Shown here piece by piece: positions 47,765-54,603 of a stretch of 64,000 nt of DNA. A program made the translations under genes and the position numbers. The stretch lies in sequence record NC_031010.1; one strand, given 5' to 3'. The notes beneath the pieces are model-generated. The model made no database searches, was not told the origin of the DNA, and saw only the letters and a list, made by a program, of their open reading frames with translations. The stretch's first letter is position 1, and each line of letters opens with the position of its first letter.

Positions 47765-47769
47765 GAATG

Positions 47770-48578: not shown

Positions 48579-48842
48579 ATGTTTACTCGTTACAATGTCG
48601 TGGGCAAGAAAGGCTCACACCTTAAACTCGAAGAACGCTTAGGCGTTACTGAGAAACCGCGCGAATTAAAGACGCGGGAAATTGATATCCCCAACCACGC
48701 CTACAGCAAAGTGGCACTGGGTGATGTACTGGCACTTCCAACCGAACTTGACACCGGTTCTGAGGTGTGGGCAACCGCTGACATTCAGCACAGTCCCCAC
48801 GCCATGACCCGTCAGTTCCCGTTAATGCGTCGAGGTATGTAA
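48579..48842 (+). CDS. hypothetical protein (87 aa)
   Basis: TAGGAG SD, TAATG coupling to the next gene. Confidence 0.7.
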   Translation: MFTRYNVVGKKGSHLKLEERLGVTEKPRELKTREIDIPNHAYSKVALGDVLALPTELDTGSEVWATADIQHSPHAMTRQFPLMRRGM

Positions 48843-49312
48843 TGGACTTTGCAGTTGTTAGTACCGACACTATCGTTCGGATGAAGAAAGCTGCAGCCAT
48901 TACGTTGGCGACTGAACGACTCATCGACAAGAACATCGCAGCGCACTGTGAACTGTTAAACAAAGTTTCAGGTGTGGCGACCGTCTACTCCTGCGAGGGC
49001 CATCTAACCCAAGAAGACGGCTTGCCACGCCGGCCGTATATCATGATGGCCTGCACCCGTCAGGGTTTGCCTTTCGTGGAAGCTTTAATGAAAGCCGCGC
49101 TGGACGACCCTACCTACGCGGTCTGTCGTTGTGAAGTGACTTTGGCGGAACTGCCGTGGGTTGAAAACAGTCAGGGGTACGAGTATGAACCCCAAGACTT
49201 TTACTACGCGTGGATACTGCGGGGTGACACGTCAGACCACCACATGTTAATGAGTCAGATTCGCGAGCACTGGCTTGTTGCCATTAACAACACCATCAAA
49301 CAATTTTCATAA
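48842..49312 (+). CDS. TYW3-like (T-x-x-SC-x-GH) protein 1
   Basis: LIDKNIAAHCELLNKVSGVATVYSCEGH resembles the TYW3/Taw3 N-terminal ID...IN...TTSSCSGR. Confidence 0.5.
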   Translation: MDFAVVSTDTIVRMKKAAAITLATERLIDKNIAAHCELLNKVSGVATVYSCEGHLTQEDGLPRRPYIMMACTRQGLPFVEALMKAALDDPTYAVCRCEVTLAELPWVENSQGYEYEPQDFYYAWILRGDTSDHHMLMSQIREHWLVAINNTIKQFS

Positions 49313-49321
49313 GGACCGACG

Positions 49322-49774
49322 ATGTTTGCCAATACCACAGTCAGTGATGAGATGCTGGCCTTCTTCTCTTCCCGCACACAAGCGCAGTTAACGACCGGTG
49401 GTGTCATTGATATCCCGATGGTGCCTGTGATCGAAAGTCTTAACCAGTTACCACATGTCGCCACTGTGCTCTGCTGTGGCGGGCACATCCGTGTGGAGAA
49501 TGGCAAACGGCGTACACGAACGCCCCACCACGTGATGCTCGTGGTGGATGCAGTGGGTTATGCAACCTTAGAGCGCATTTACCGTCTCTGGCAGGAAACC
49601 GAATACGCAGACAATATCCATCTCTGTGTCTCCCGGTTATTGCACATGCGGGAAAGTGGCTTTAAAGGGTATTACCCAGTGTGGAAGTTTCAACTTAACC
49701 TGCGCCCTGAACCTGAAGTTATTGAGGGAATGTGCAAGGCGTGGGTGCGTATCGCTAATGCCTGTAAGGAATAA
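49322..49774 (+). CDS. TYW3-like protein 2
   Basis: VIDIPMVPVIESLNQLPHVATVLCCGGH. Confidence 0.5.
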   Translation: MFANTTVSDEMLAFFSSRTQAQLTTGGVIDIPMVPVIESLNQLPHVATVLCCGGHIRVENGKRRTRTPHHVMLVVDAVGYATLERIYRLWQETEYADNIHLCVSRLLHMRESGFKGYYPVWKFQLNLRPEPEVIEGMCKAWVRIANACKE

Positions 49775-49785
49775 TCCTCTGTATT

Positions 49786-49817
49786 GCTAGCCTCTGGGGC
49801 TAGCTTTCTTCTTTTTA
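49786..49817 (+). terminator. intrinsic terminator
   Basis: GCTAGCC/GGCTAGC plus T tract. Confidence 0.75.
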
Positions 49818-49882
49818 TTCGCAAAAATAATAGTCCCGTTTTTCACGTATTAGACGTTTCTAATGTAAGGAGAATATACGCA

Positions 49883-50506
49883 ATGGCAACCCCAAAGAAA
49901 CGTAATAAAAAGTACAACCGTGTGAAGTCCATGGACAACATCGCACTCAGCGCTGCACAGAACGCACTGAACCGTATCGCCTTCGTGGGCAGCTCTATCC
50001 GACCGCTTGCCCCTTATGGCGGGCGGTCTTTTCAATTAACATCAACCGGCAACATGCGTATCGCGGTGGCTGAGATTCTGACCTCGTCGCTGTTCGAAGA
50101 AGCACGGGATTGGCGGGCGTGGATTCTGCATCTGTATCAGGACGGTGAGGCGATTACTGCTGAGAGCATGCGCTTGCTGCTGCCGGAGTACACGCTGGCG
50201 GACTTCACCGAGCACGCTGACTTCCTTATCGAACAAACCCGCGATAAAGAACAGGTGCACTACGGCTATGCCATCTTTGCCTCCCCGACCGACAAGTTCG
50301 ATTTGGACGCCATGGATGAGGGACTCACGGAGAACTTCATGCACTCCGGTATCCTCGACAAGTCTCAGCACTTAACGCCTGAAGAGCACAAGGTGGATAA
50401 AGCTTTGATGCTGGCAAAGATTGTGGGTTATCAGACCAAGTTTGATGTCACCCGCAAACACAAAGTGGAGATGCCTGAAACCTACGTGAAAACCGGGGAG
50501 GAGTAA
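49883..50506 (+). CDS. hypothetical protein with basic N-terminus (207 aa)
   Basis: GTAAGGAG SD; MATPKKRNKKYN. Confidence 0.7.
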   Translation: MATPKKRNKKYNRVKSMDNIALSAAQNALNRIAFVGSSIRPLAPYGGRSFQLTSTGNMRIAVAEILTSSLFEEARDWRAWILHLYQDGEAITAESMRLLLPEYTLADFTEHADFLIEQTRDKEQVHYGYAIFASPTDKFDLDAMDEGLTENFMHSGILDKSQHLTPEEHKVDKALMLAKIVGYQTKFDVTRKHKVEMPETYVKTGEE

Positions 50507-50808
50507 TGGCGAACGCACGCGGATTATTGCGAGGGCCGAAATTCAGTGGACGCCACCAAACGATCATTGAAGAGGCCAAGACCCTGTTAGTATTCGCGAA
50601 AGACTGCGATGTGATTAAGAAAGTCGTGTTAGGTAAAATCAAACCTACGGGCGGTAAAGCCTCGGGATTGAAGTTTAAGTTAATGGAAACCTCGGTTGCG
50701 GTCGAGGTTATTTCACCCCGTCAATGGCAAGTCCTCTACTTTATCGGCAACCCGCCTGAAGTATTGGAAGTATTACAACACAATTACCCACAAGGATTAA
50801 TCTCATGA
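50506..50808 (+). CDS. DUF2103-like protein
   Basis: KFSGRHQTIIE...VVLGKI...Q.LY pattern recalls DUF2103. Confidence 0.45.
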   Translation: MANARGLLRGPKFSGRHQTIIEEAKTLLVFAKDCDVIKKVVLGKIKPTGGKASGLKFKLMETSVAVEVISPRQWQVLYFIGNPPEVLEVLQHNYPQGLIS

Positions 50809-51236
50809 AAATCAAAGTAATCAAAACGGAAGAAGTAAAACACATTGCCAATGGTATTCTGTTGGAGCGCCCACTGTCCGACTTCGCTAATCCTGACGAT
50901 CTTCAATCCGCGTTCCGTCGTCTGGTGCGGGGGCTGCTCTACTGCGAAAAAGGTGTGCCGGATACCTCTGGCATGAACGCCTTTGATGCACTGTTTCGTG
51001 TGAAAACCATCGAGCCCGACAGCGTCTGCGGTTCCATCGTTGACGCTGCAATTGACGTGGTGGATAACAAAGTTGTGGTGCGGGGCACCTTTGTCCCGGC
51101 GGGTCCATTAAAAGAGCTGGCGAAGGCTGCGATGGATATCCTCGATGAGCTGCCGCTGGTTCCGCGCTACGTGCTGGACTACGACGGCAAAATCGTATCG
51201 ATTGAGACGTGGGACCTGCTGGAACTGCAGGGATGA
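50805..51236 (+). CDS. prohead-protease-fold paralog, apparently catalytically dead (143 aa)
   Basis: GLLYCEKGVP, IEPDSVCGSI, GTFVPAGP, LVPR and IETWD follow the motif order of phiKZ gp175-type proteases, but GHP reads GVP and FSIR reads LVPR. Confidence 0.55.
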   Translation: MKIKVIKTEEVKHIANGILLERPLSDFANPDDLQSAFRRLVRGLLYCEKGVPDTSGMNAFDALFRVKTIEPDSVCGSIVDAAIDVVDNKVVVRGTFVPAGPLKELAKAAMDILDELPLVPRYVLDYDGKIVSIETWDLLELQG

Positions 51237-51436
51237 ATCCGCTTCAAATCTGGGGCGTAGTTGTCTACGCCATCTTCTCCTTTGTGATGGCGCTCGCATT
51301 GATGTCGCTTGCGCCACGCTATAAGCCGGGAAGATTACTCCCGATTGTTCTCTTCTACCTCGCCGTGATTGCGGTATTAACCGCCGGCGGGTATCTTTTT
51401 GGTTGGTATGTTTTAAGTGGATTAAAGGTGGATTAA
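51233..51436 (+). CDS. small 2-TM membrane protein (67 aa)
   Basis: ATGA and TAATG couplings; two hydrophobic helices. Confidence 0.7.
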   Translation: MNPLQIWGVVVYAIFSFVMALALMSLAPRYKPGRLLPIVLFYLAVIAVLTAGGYLFGWYVLSGLKVD

Positions 51437-52422
51437 TGCCGACGTATATTGCATTAACTGGCGGGTTGGATTCAACGTGGTGTTTGGTCAACGGTAAGAA
51501 GGCTGGAAACAGTCTGGAGCCTGTGGTGTTTAACATGGGCAACGGCATCAACGCGGTTATCATTGAGTATCTGTTGGGTCGTGAAATGGTACGTCGTCTC
51601 TGGAAGGATAAAAAAGGTGACGTGATGCCCCACCATGCGTGGGGTAAGCAAAAACTCGGCGGGTACATTTTCACTAACAACAATACGCCGACCATGCGCA
51701 TGATTCAACAGGGGCGGGTGGTCAATGGTCTGGCACGGGTTGCCTGCGATGATAGCCGTATACGTGACCCGATTCATTGTATCGTTGGCTGGCATCGTGA
51801 TGACGCGTTTGAGAACAACGGTGAGTACGGTGATTGGTCACTGGACGACTACAGTAAACTCAAGCAGTTGTTTGAATTGCAATGCTACTTTGCAGACACG
51901 GGTCGCCGTATTCAGCCGCTGGGCACCCCGGCTTGGGATAAGCCGAAGATTGACATGTGGAATGAGCTACCGGCCGACATCCGTCCGCTGGTGACTGTTC
52001 ACTGGCATAACCCGCTAAACATTTACTATTCTGACAAACGCAAAGAGCTGCTGATTTGCACCCAACCAAGATATTTCTCGCACAAGGTTAACGAGTATAT
52101 TGCGCTGGGTATTGACCCAACAGCCGCGTGGATATTCAAAGAAGATGAAAACCTCCTGCGTGAACTTTCTGCCCCGCTGTTTAAAGAGGATGTGTTACCG
52201 ATGGCCATTAAACACATGCTGAGTGTGGTGCCACCGGGCTCTGTCACGAATATGGAAAAAGTCCACATCGATGACAGCATCACTATTAATCAAACCTATT
52301 CGCATAGCCGCTGGAGTGTCGAAGGTGAATCAATCTTACAAGAGTTTAAAGAAGACTTTGAAGAGACTCATTACGCTGCTCTTCAAAAAGAAAAAGCCGG
52401 AACAGCCGAAGCGGACGCTTGA
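51436..52422 (+). CDS. QueC-like PP-loop (adenine nucleotide alpha-hydrolase) protein
   Basis: IALTGGLDST PP-loop and PAWDKPKIDMW (QueC P.x.K.EI equivalent); no C-terminal Zn-binding Cys cluster. Confidence 0.65.
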   Translation: MPTYIALTGGLDSTWCLVNGKKAGNSLEPVVFNMGNGINAVIIEYLLGREMVRRLWKDKKGDVMPHHAWGKQKLGGYIFTNNNTPTMRMIQQGRVVNGLARVACDDSRIRDPIHCIVGWHRDDAFENNGEYGDWSLDDYSKLKQLFELQCYFADTGRRIQPLGTPAWDKPKIDMWNELPADIRPLVTVHWHNPLNIYYSDKRKELLICTQPRYFSHKVNEYIALGIDPTAAWIFKEDENLLRELSAPLFKEDVLPMAIKHMLSVVPPGSVTNMEKVHIDDSITINQTYSHSRWSVEGESILQEFKEDFEETHYAALQKEKAGTAEADA

Positions 52423-52858
52423 CGACATCGTTCGTGAGTTGTTTGATTCGGAAGACCGGGATATCCCGGCTTTTGCCTCGGCCATGGGGATGTCGGTACC
52501 TGACCTGTACTTCGCCGTGAAAGACCCTTATCTGCGTGGTAACATCAAAGGCTTTGCAGGACAGGAAGCCAAGGTCATCATTAACGAACGGAACGATCGC
52601 CTCATCTTTGGTCGCAATGCCGTCCTCATCAGCATGCCTGATCGGGGCAACTTGCGTTTCGAGAACCTCGACGAGGGGATTGACCACCTTCGTCGCATGG
52701 CAAAACCGGATACGTTGCTTAAGATGTTCCCGCATGACATCAAAGAGCACACTGTGATGTTCTCGCTGACTGATGTGAAGGGCGACGCGGCTTTGGGCGT
52801 AATCTCGCAGCTCTCTAAAGCGCAGTTCGAGAAATTACTGGAAAGGTTCAAGGAGTAG
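52358..52858 (+). CDS. protein with HTH-like N-terminus
   Basis: Probable TTG start (MKRLITLLFKK); IPAFASAMGMSVPDLY. Start uncertain. Confidence 0.55.
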   Translation: MKRLITLLFKKKKPEQPKRTLDDIVRELFDSEDRDIPAFASAMGMSVPDLYFAVKDPYLRGNIKGFAGQEAKVIINERNDRLIFGRNAVLISMPDRGNLRFENLDEGIDHLRRMAKPDTLLKMFPHDIKEHTVMFSLTDVKGDAALGVISQLSKAQFEKLLERFKE

Positions 52859-52860
52859 CA

Positions 52861-54603
52861 ATGAAGATAATGGTGAACTTGCCGGAGATGACGCCATCGG
52901 ACTTTGTGGCATTGTTTGATAAGCACGTTTACGGGCAGGAACAAGCCAAGAAGATGCTGGCCATTGCCCTGCGTAACCGCTACCGCACCTCGCTCTTACT
53001 CGGGCAAGACCGCTTTAGCGTGAACAAGCAGAACGTGTTATTGCATGGCCCGACGGGTACCGGTAAAACGGCCCTGATTCGTGTGTTGCGCAAAGACCTC
53101 GAATTGCCGGTGCTGGAGTTCGACATGACCTCCTTTACTGAGTCGGGCTACGTCGGGCGTAGCATCGAAGAGATTGGCAAGGAGCTGAGGGAGCTGACCA
53201 AAGGCCTGAAGATTCCGAACTGGTATCTGGAAGCGCACGGTCAGCCCATTAACAAAGAGCCGGAAAGGAAGTACACCCGGGCGGAGTTAGAGGAACTGCA
53301 AAGGCAGGAGCTGCGCAACGACATGCAGGAGCGGGACGAACACCGTAAGCGTTTCAATGAAGCGTACAACGCCGCCTTGGACGAACTCAAGGCGTCGGGT
53401 GTGCTGGATATCGAAAAGCACGGTACGTACCTCAGCGTCTACTATTACCGCTGCCTGTTGTTAGGGCTTTACCGCTCTAACCACATTGAGGATGTATCGG
53501 GGCTGCAAGAACTCACCACGCTTAATATCGATGGTCTGGATTTCGGTGCTGTGTTTAAGGATACGGCCCGTTTGAAAGAGTTGTCCGATCTGGAGAACAG
53601 TGATGAAGAGCTCAGCGAAATGGGTGAGGCAGAACTCGAAGCGGAAGTGGCAGCCATCATGGCGCGGTTACTCAGGACAATGGGTCCAATTGAGTCTGAG
53701 TTTATTGAGCTGGGTCGTCGTTACATGAACAGCTATCCGTCCATGGCAACGGCCCCTCACGAAACGTGGGCACAGTTCGCTGACCAGTTTGAGGAAAGTG
53801 ATGATGCGCTGCGACCCATCGGGTTCAAAGCGATCCGTGTGGAAGACCCTGAACTGCACGCCCTGACCTTGTTGCATAGCGACATTGAGCTTGCAGAGAA
53901 ACAGCTCACCACCTGTGACGATTTTTCACACTACGTTGACGACGACCTCTGGGTGCTGCCGAAGTTTGAGCAGTTAAGTAAGGAAGCCATTGAAGCGCAA
54001 GAAAAGAGCGACAGCCCGAAACGGCGTATCGATCCTAAGTCGTTTGTGGAGAACTTCGCGGTGGTATTCTTAGATGAGATTGACAAACTCATTGAAGAAG
54101 ACACCACCCGAACCCACGTCTCGCGTTCTGGGGTACAGCGCAGTTTATTGAAGATGGTCGAAGGCGGAACCTACCACGGTATCGACACCACAAATATCTT
54201 GTTCGTGGCCGCGGGCGCGTTTGCCATTTCTCCTATCAGTAAACTGATGCCAGAGCTGCAAGGTCGTTTCCCACTACGGGGCCGGCTGAACGCACTGGAC
54301 GCCGATGCGTTTGTGCACATCTGTAAGATGACGGGCAGCGAGTTCCAAGGTCACATCGCGCTGATGCGTACTGAGAACGTCCAAGTCAAATACGACATGG
54401 ACACGTATCAGGTGATTGCAGAACGCACGCTTGCCCAAAACATGGTGGACAATCTCGGTGCCCGACGTCTGGGTGCGGTGATTAATGCCATCTTCCAACC
54501 TGCTATGTACGAGCCGGAGAAATACCGTCAAAACGGTTTTGATATCCGCGGTGAAACTTTACGAGCCATGAGTAAACCCAATGATGGAAACCAAAAGCAT
54601 TAG
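52861..54603 (+). CDS. hslU: HslU-like AAA+ ATPase with enlarged I-domain
   Basis: GQEQAK..AIALRNR, GPTGTGKT, GYVG, FLDEIDK, GVQRSLL, PELQGR and NLGARRL motifs. Confidence 0.92.
   Translation: MKIMVNLPEMTPSDFVALFDKHVYGQEQAKKMLAIALRNRYRTSLLLGQDRFSVNKQNVLLHGPTGTGKTALIRVLRKDLELPVLEFDMTSFTESGYVGRSIEEIGKELRELTKGLKIPNWYLEAHGQPINKEPERKYTRAELEELQRQELRNDMQERDEHRKRFNEAYNAALDELKASGVLDIEKHGTYLSVYYYRCLLLGLYRSNHIEDVSGLQELTTLNIDGLDFGAVFKDTARLKELSDLENSDEELSEMGEAELEAEVAAIMARLLRTMGPIESEFIELGRRYMNSYPSMATAPHETWAQFADQFEESDDALRPIGFKAIRVEDPELHALTLLHSDIELAEKQLTTCDDFSHYVDDDLWVLPKFEQLSKEAIEAQEKSDSPKRRIDPKSFVENFAVVFLDEIDKLIEEDTTRTHVSRSGVQRSLLKMVEGGTYHGIDTTNILFVAAGAFAISPISKLMPELQGRFPLRGRLNALDADAFVHICKMTGSEFQGHIALMRTENVQVKYDMDTYQVIAERTLAQNMVDNLGARRLGAVINAIFQPAMYEPEKYRQNGFDIRGETLRAMSKPNDGNQKH

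Follow-up and report, generated by a model that had tools for sequence, protein, structure and literature searches.

Ali et al. reported in 2017 that gp117, a protein of phage SPN3US, is a paralog of the prohead protease from which it has diverged, and termed the existence of a second, disarmed copy of a head protease unprecedented (Front Microbiol 8:2251, PMC5694885). Phages rarely have such a copy. In the same study, the catalytic His, Ser and Asp residues of the SPN3US protease gp245 were mapped by comparison with T4 gp21, and the C-terminal region of gp245 was described as the part that contains the auto-cleavage site and targets the protein to the prohead (PMC5694885). Residues S126 and D144 of gp117 align with the catalytic Ser and Asp, and no residue aligns with the His; the authors speculated that gp117 is the remnant of a protease gene and that gp118, the next gene downstream, might be its lost 3' part (PMC5694885). 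The homologs of gp117 that they listed include Stratton gp135 and Kwan gp144, distinct from the proteases assigned in these phages (Stratton gp267 and Kwan gp271), as well as 201phi2-1 gp206 and PhiPA3 gp143 (PMC5694885). A search of the full-text literature returned no later functional work on gp117. Here we analyze gp144 of Erwinia phage vB_EamM_Kwan within a window of 64,000 nucleotides corresponding to bases 62001-126000 of NC_031010.1/KX397369.1 (window positions 49800-52500 are 100% identical to positions 111800-114500 of the record).

Since the family, Kwan gp144 included by name, was published in 2017, the core finding was already known. The catalytic census, the estimates of selection and evolutionary rate, the mapping of dispensability and the description of gene coupling presented below are modest increments to it. 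On the whole, these data make it rather probable that gp144 is an accessory pseudoprotease, maintained though non-catalytic, whose mode of action is binding.

Relationship of gp144 to the prohead proteases

The gene is positioned as follows.

50805..51236, plus strand (112805-113236 in NC_031010.1): gp144 (YP_009278749.1), 143 amino acids, a single-domain, short paralog of the S80/gp21-type prohead protease

The ATG of gp144 overlaps the stop codon of the upstream gene, gp143 (ATGA), and is preceded, 9 nt upstream, by a Shine-Dalgarno-like AAGGA sequence. The product is named "head maturation protease" in RefSeq and hypothetical in GenBank. The RefSeq name, also given to homologs of gp144 (entries NC_031010, NC_048016, NC_027402, NC_042056 and NC_010821), is misleading and constitutes an over-annotation that probably originated from the PHROG label; the protein that deserves it in Kwan is the real head maturation enzyme, gp271.

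The initial proposal, made from the DNA letters alone (hereafter the sequence-only reading), was that gp144 is a paralog of the phiKZ gp175/T4 gp21 type of prohead protease, and profile comparisons uphold it. The Pfam family Peptidase_S80 (PF20034, the phiKZ gp175 family) matches residues 37-111 only, with an E value of 8.4e-5 and a score of 22.3 bits that does not reach the curated threshold of 23.4 bits. The match to phrog_7478 is full length (E 2.9e-37; gp144 residues 1-140 aligned to positions 4-145 of the 147-position profile), and a tblastn comparison with SPN3US gp117 gives 34.5% identity over 97% of the query. When a profile of 16 paralog sequences was aligned with hhalign to a profile of 10 true-protease sequences, the two matched over 127 columns with a probability of 98.8% and an E value of 6.1e-17; in the paralog consensus of this comparison, neither the His nor the Ser column is conserved. 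In addition, a hidden Markov model (HMM) built from nine paralogs retrieved the true proteases of SPN3US, Stratton, SPAsTU, Machina, PCH45, pEa_SNUABM_4, phiKZ, PhiPA3 and 201phi2-1 at E values between 2e-5 and 5e-12.

A structural model was generated with AlphaFold2 from an alignment of 15 sequences, comprising the sequence encoded in the window and matches from the protein search (pLDDT 86.4, pTM 0.77). The best match of the model in the PDB, as identified by Foldseek, is T4 gp21 (5JBL; probability 0.97). Superposition on 5JBL_A with VIA-align gave a Z score of 10.8 and a root-mean-square deviation of 2.8 Å over 125 of the 143 residues, covering gp21 residues 12-172; the runners-up scored 4.5 or less, with herpesvirus assemblins between 3 and 4.4. 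Only structure or profile-profile comparison reveals the relationship to T4 gp21: a search of PDB sequences with a profile of the family alignment returned nothing at E ≤ 10. Because three independent lines (hhalign, the nine-paralog HMM and the matches of the AlphaFold2 model) converge, the similarity lies beyond chance. Judged from these profiles and from the predicted fold, the homology of gp144 to the S80/gp21 prohead proteases is solid, and by the model gp144 comprises a whole gp21/assemblin-type protease-fold domain.

A single member gives a poor view of this family. Searching a representative library with one sequence yielded 12 relatives at E ≤ 1e-3, while structure matches in BFVD show the family to be broader; a search for related loci with the gp144 protein alone returned Wellington only, and the family alignment contained no stretch of sufficient conservation for a search of this type.

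The assigned protease of Kwan and the part missing from gp144

A six-frame search of the entire Kwan record with PF20034 identified a 298.6-bit match at record positions 224684-225379, corresponding to gp271 (271 amino acids), and otherwise the weak match to gp144 only. Thus, gp144 is separate from, and additional to, the assigned prohead protease. In the hhalign alignment, gp144 covers residues 43-187 of gp271. It ends six residues past the W-D motif, a point after which gp271 has some 90 further residues, and is devoid of about 85-125 C-terminal residues of gp271, including the A-Q-E site found in the C-terminal extension. By analogy with gp245, the C-terminal region of gp271 would carry the auto-cleavage site and the prohead-targeting function. 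The description of gp144 as a trimmed protease therefore holds in the sense that the full protease-fold domain is retained and the C-terminal, prohead-targeting part of roughly 85-125 residues is not.

The sequence-only reading also placed gp144 far from morphogenesis genes. This is correct for the real protease, which lies 112 kb away, and incorrect as a general statement, since the large terminase gene (gp157) starts about 6.4 kb downstream from gp144. A gene for an EPS depolymerase/fibre follows the annotated large terminase gp157.

Motifs and catalytic columns

Five motifs had been noticed in gp144, in the order in which they occur in proteases. All are present in that order: G43-L-L-Y-C47-E48-K-G50-V51-P52, I-E-P-D-S-V-C75-G-S-I, G-T-F-V-P98-A-G100-P, L-V119-P-R121 and I-E-T-W136-D137. 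Individual elements within them map to the following positions.

50943..50960, plus strand: "His loop", C47-E48-K-G50-V51-P52; V51 aligns with the catalytic His (H77 of gp271, H85 of T4 gp21)
51027..51029, plus strand: C75 of the V-C-G strand, present in almost all paralogs (>90%)
51096..51107, plus strand: P98-A-G100-P101 loop, common to paralogs and true proteases
51159..51167, plus strand: V119-P-R121; V119 aligns with the catalytic Ser (S153 of gp271, S140 of T4 gp21)
51210..51215, plus strand: W136-D137; D137 aligns with the third triad residue (D178 of gp271 and gp245)

Columns were assigned from a MAFFT alignment of gp144, gp271 and the paralogs of ten other phages, and from hhalign. 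In these alignments, the columns containing H77, S153 and D178 of gp271 are occupied in gp144 by V51, V119 and D137, respectively. Valine at both the His and the Ser position, as originally read from the sequence, is thus borne out, and gp144 has neither half of a His-Ser dyad in the catalytic columns. The Asp column is kept, with D137 aligning to D178 of gp271 and gp245, and is conserved in all full-length members aligned. The true proteases also have E48 and P52, whereas C47 is a paralog-specific residue (about 75% of members); at the position of C75, true proteases have Ser or another residue. R121 is found in 23 of 25 aligned paralog sequences, the column being occupied by His in two metagenomic representatives. 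Codon 119 is polymorphic in close environmental relatives, where either Val or Ala is encoded (V119A, 51160 T>C).

The census of catalytic columns was extended to about 24 members of the family. The His column contains V, S, H, A, N, P, R, Q, E and other residues, and the Ser column V, A, G, S, R or K; Ser is retained in about one third of the members. His, Ser and Asp occur together only in SPAsTU gene 41 and 201phi2-1 gp210. Residues that the family has in common with the true proteases (E48, P52, P98/G100, R121 and D137) are kept in nearly all members.

A maximum-likelihood tree places the true proteases in a single clade (support 99/96) and the paralogs on much longer branches, in at least two subfamilies. 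The group that includes Kwan gp144 (subfamily A) also contains SPN3US gp117, Stratton gp135 and Machina gp130. The topology indicates that the duplication predates these phage genera. The number of paralogs varies between one and three per genome; many phages have two or three, some of them in tandem or with extra domains. All phages examined, which infect Erwinia, Salmonella, Serratia and Pseudomonas, have the paralog with an uninterrupted reading frame. In phiKZ no paralog was detectable with the paralog profile, whose only match was gp175. A connection with the phiKZ lysis regulator gp143 (PMC12894885) was considered and dropped, this being a different protein.

Further short genes with the protease fold lie beside known paralogs, namely PhiPA3 gp142 (L040:2592-3101), which is also among the BFVD structure matches, and 201phi2-1 gp210 (L041:5091-5468). 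Having the three catalytic residues in its sequence, the latter might still be active.

Selection, evolutionary rate and dispensability

Between Kwan and Wellington, a phage of the same species, gp144 shows a dN of 0.029 and a dS of 0.30 (dN/dS 0.096), values similar to those of neighboring genes. Sequence nearly identical (about 97%) to window positions 50506-51436 is present in plant, leaf, soil and food metagenome contigs from many independent studies, so Wellingtonvirus-like phages are apparently common on plant-associated samples. In contigs from four public runs, the gp144 variants comprise 24 synonymous and 8 non-synonymous changes, V119A being one of the latter. Judging from these sequence comparisons, gp144 is under purifying selection.

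The contigs in question belong to near-identical phages, and two of the four runs are labeled as plant or soil metagenome. The public runs that cover the stretch well consist of DNA-type contigs from plant, soil and leaf metagenomes, the few RNA-labeled rows covering only small shares of it; they were used for natural variation only.

The paralog and the protease differ markedly in their rates of divergence. In the same pairs of phages, the paralogs are 25-37% identical and the protease domains 79-82%; gp271 is 100% identical in Kwan and Wellington. By these identities, the paralog evolves about 4-5 times faster than the true protease between genera.

Transposon-insertion sequencing (Tn-seq) of phage PCH45 classified gp220 as non-essential and gp81 as essential (preprint 10.64898/2025.12.19.695335). 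The PCH45 genome has exactly two protease-related loci, and the coding sequence of the paralog (208566-209045) stands at place 220 among the 225 features annotated; gp220 is thus identified as the paralog and gp81 as the true protease. A gp144 homolog can accordingly be lost from PCH45 with plaques still being formed. As to virion content, SPN3US gp117 was not found in those portions of the virion-proteome supplementary text of the 2017 and 2023 SPN3US studies that were available, which is weak evidence that the protein is not packaged.

Genes surrounding gp144

The genes immediately around gp144, and an ATPase gene further downstream, are listed below.

50506..50808, plus strand: gp143, 100 amino acids; its stop codon overlaps the gp144 start (ATGA); weak match to DUF2103 (E 0.003)
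51233..51436, plus strand: gp145, 67 amino acids; membrane protein with two transmembrane segments (2-TM) predicted from hydropathy; its ATG overlaps the gp144 stop codon (ATGA)
51436..52422, plus strand: gp146, 328 amino acids; phrog_8825 (E 2.8e-122); its start overlaps the gp145 stop codon (TAATG)
52861-54603, plus strand: gp148, 580 amino acids; HslU/ClpX-like AAA+ ATPase (PF07724, PF00004, phrog_4339)

Wellington (L005) has no gp143, the paralog in this phage directly following the homolog of gp142; gp143 is thus dispensable for whatever the gene block does. Through the overlap between the gp145 ATG and the gp144 stop codon, the two genes are translationally coupled. The gp145 protein is 100% identical in Kwan and Wellington (dN = 0 despite a dS of 0.13), and its position makes it a possible partner of gp144, a candidate from gene context. 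In pEa_SNUABM_11, SPAsTU, Stratton, Machina, pEa_SNUABM_4 and SPN3US, too, the gene after the paralog is a small one encoding a 2-TM or signal-peptide protein; the 2-TM genes occupying the gp145 slot in related genera look functionally similar and are non-homologous. A gene of the size of gp146 is found after the paralog and the small-protein block in all SPN3US-like phages examined. Overall, the Kwan neighborhood follows the family pattern, with a phrog_7413 pair and phrog_6965 upstream, and a small envelope protein and a phrog_8825 gene of about 330 amino acids downstream. PHROG assignments were made for the Kwan genes; for the other phages, the comparison covered only the order and the size of the genes.

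Ali et al. suggested that the C-terminal half of the protease had been split off as the downstream gene, an idea that we reject. Neither SPN3US gp118 (L004:6468-6800) and its homologs (L008:4175-4516; L010:4632-4928) nor Kwan gp145 resembles protease C-termini in BLAST comparisons, in which all E values were 1 or higher. SPN3US gp118 and its homologs have a signal-peptide-like, hydrophobic N-terminus ending in A-H-A.

In SPAsTU and Machina, an ATPase of the gp148 type adjoins the paralog. Searching with Kwan gp148, without a positive control, revealed no homolog in SPN3US, Stratton, PCH45, PhiPA3 or 201phi2-1, and the idea of the HslU/ClpX-like ATPase as a general partner of the paralogs was set aside on account of these five paralog-bearing phages. 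In Erwinia phage RAY, the HslU homolog (gp116) reportedly localizes to the phage nucleus (bioRxiv 10.1101/2023.02.24.529968).

Some additional features of the region were recorded. The gp146 N-terminus contains a PP-loop-like motif, L-T-G-G-L-D-S, and its match to QueC is very weak (E 0.21). The phrog_7413 pair consists of the tandem paralogs gp140 and gp141 (48842-49774, plus strand; 156 and 150 amino acids; E 1.7e-51 and 2e-55), which give a faint TYW3-like match; SPN3US, SPAsTU, Stratton and Wellington have an equivalent pair ahead of their protease paralogs. A strong terminator-like hairpin on the plus strand (50001-50028; 11-bp stem with 8 GC pairs, followed by a T-run) lies inside the annotated gp142 open reading frame (49883-50506), implying either that the start of gp142 is annotated too far upstream or that the hairpin is an internal attenuator. 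Similar hairpins, at 47769, 48489 and 49786, are intergenic.

Discussion

We favor the interpretation of gp144 as a maintained pseudoenzyme because both the general base and the nucleophile are lost, no alternative His is conserved, the gene is under purifying selection and the fold is predicted with confidence. A family in which neither catalytic residue is conserved, which is nonetheless under purifying selection and is encoded by a fast-diverging accessory gene, moves from "possible remnant" to maintained pseudoenzyme. Having no prohead-targeting tail, gp144 would remain outside the prohead and act through binding only; the protein is probably cytoplasmic and not packaged. Its most likely mechanism there would be to occupy peptide loops of the kind recognized by the real protease, or surfaces of the protease itself, and such occupancy would buffer off-target or premature proteolysis. 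Given that the paralog evolves fast, differs in copy number, can be dispensed with and lies among accessory genes, we prefer a changeable partner on the host side, such as the baits of protease-sensing immune systems, over the near-invariant protease. If gp144 is indeed a pseudoenzyme, a decoy directed at the host is in our rough estimate the foremost of the specific roles, and even so a tentative one; regulation of the true protease seems somewhat less likely, partnership with a membrane protein is doubtful, and some other binding role would account for the remainder.

Several considerations weigh against this interpretation. The binding partner of gp144 is putative throughout. Rapid divergence and dispensability are equally expected from weak constraint, and the PCH45 homolog on which dispensability was scored belongs to the other subfamily and is 29% identical to gp144. 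The conserved motifs could be structural rather than mark a peptide-binding cleft. Since two members keep the triad and about one third the Ser, some relatives could still be enzymes. Finally, the absence of gp117 from virions is drawn from incomplete supplementary text.

Could gp144 itself still be an enzyme, with a non-canonical nucleophile such as the paralog-specific Cys47 or Cys75? Both cysteines are conserved in most paralogs and not in the true proteases, and D137, E48 and R121 are retained. However, the family has no conserved His or other general base (the sole His of gp144, H13, lies in a poorly conserved N-terminal stretch), C47 is replaced by Ala, Val or Thr in five members and C75 by Gly in one, so that we regard residual catalysis as very improbable. 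The opposite view, that of the "potential protease remnant" of Ali et al. (PMC5694885), would have gp144 as a truncated ex-protease gene left without present function after gene displacement. Loss of His, Ser and the C-terminus, high divergence and the non-essentiality of the PCH45 paralog all agree with the discussion in that paper; yet the frame is intact in every phage examined, synonymous variants prevail (24 against 8, with the dN/dS of 0.096), the motifs are conserved, the fold prediction is confident, and tandem duplicates and domain fusions have been retained. Moreover, SPN3US gp118, put forward as the lost half, begins like a signal peptide and does not resemble the C-termini of the proteases. 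The selection data in particular make a functionless remnant unlikely, and we consider it improbable.

The two remaining alternatives assign gp144 a specific partner within the phage. It could be a regulatory or "poison" subunit that co-oligomerizes with gp271 and keeps it inactive or untargeted until the prohead assembles, in line with the head-maturation timer put forward in the sequence-only reading. T4 gp21 (5JBL) reportedly crystallized as a pentamer, herpesvirus assemblins are dimers, and regulation of an active enzyme by its dead paralog is well represented, for example, by cFLIP and caspase-8. The fold of gp144 is that of the protease domain without the targeting C-terminus, it would fit the usual logic of such pairs, and the non-essential phenotype in PCH45 fits a fine-tuning role. 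But gp271 is nearly invariant (100% between Kwan and Wellington, 79-82% between genera), whereas the paralog shows 25-37% identity, is present in one to three copies and was not detected in phiKZ; an interface co-evolving with a fixed partner predicts otherwise than a fast-diverging paralog, and the regulatory model is weakened by it. The gene also lies 112 kb from the head module. We therefore hold this model to be fairly unlikely. Alternatively, gp144 might be the cytoplasmic partner of the small envelope proteins encoded next to it (gp145 and counterparts), for instance, a regulator of a membrane protein comparable to phiKZ gp143, a cytoplasmic regulator that binds the holin (PMC12894885). 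Consistent with this idea are the ATGA coupling of gp144 to the 2-TM gp145 and the small 2-TM or signal-peptide gene after the paralog in six other SPN3US-like phages; since these phages are all related, however, the shared gene order is not independent evidence. Furthermore, the paralogs of PCH45, PhiPA3 and 201phi2-1 are not followed by membrane proteins and the small proteins have no detectable homology between genera, which leaves an envelope-related role unlikely.

Within the maintained pseudoenzyme interpretation, the decoy idea merits separate comment. Its premise, that prohead proteases trigger some systems of antiphage signaling based on cyclic oligonucleotides (CBASS), is borne out by a mechanism described for T4 gp21, which activates CBASS by cleaving the activation loop of the CD-NTase (Hobbs and Kranzusch, 2026 preprint, PMC12991175). 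Activation needs gp21 catalysis by its catalytic pair, H85/S140; mere presence of the protein is insufficient (PMC12991175). A dead, cytoplasmic protease domain would bind such "tripwire" loops and so protect them against the active protease of the phage itself. That gp144 is a decoy for immune systems that sense proteases has thus become mechanistically plausible by analogy with the findings in this preprint. The case for placing gp144 among anti-CBASS factors is circumstantial: an accessory neighborhood, fast evolution, dispensability and the sensing of gp21 activity by CBASS. We rate as rather unlikely the specific proposition that gp144 and its relatives are counter-defense decoys against immune systems with protease-cleavable loops, such as those of CBASS CD-NTases. 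If true, it would explain why cleft motifs are kept without His and Ser, and would account for the fast evolution, the variation in copy number and the dispensability on a permissive laboratory host. With the 2025-2026 preprints in hand, the choice between decoy and regulator is now directly testable in SPN3US amber genetics and by PCH45 Tn-seq.

Comparison with known systems

Pseudoenzyme paralogs such as cFLIP, in its relation to caspase-8, resemble gp144 in that fold and cleft motifs are kept, nucleophile and base are lost, and purifying selection applies; they differ in that a partner or a regulatory effect in the phage family is putative only. T4 gp21 (5JBL) is the best structural match at a sequence identity of 13-15%, with H85 and S140 in the two columns where gp144 has Val. 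With the S80 proteases (phiKZ gp175, SPN3US gp245 and Kwan gp271), gp144 shares the fold, the order of the motifs, E48, P52, P-x-G-P, R121 and W/F-D. Unlike them, it has neither the catalytic His and Ser nor the C-terminal targeting and auto-cleavage region, scores below the Pfam cut-off and is encoded outside the head module; in PCH45, the true protease is essential and the paralog is not.

The SPN3US gp117 family (phrog_7478) is the one to which gp144 belongs, and with gp117 it agrees in size class, missing C-terminal part, lack of an aligned His, gene neighborhood and placement in subfamily A of the tree. SPN3US gp117 keeps the Ser (S126), whereas Kwan gp144 has Val in its place and is thus without both His and Ser. 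The paper on gp117 left the question of activity open and suggested a remnant; in the present analysis, the downstream genes are envelope proteins and gp144 is under purifying selection.

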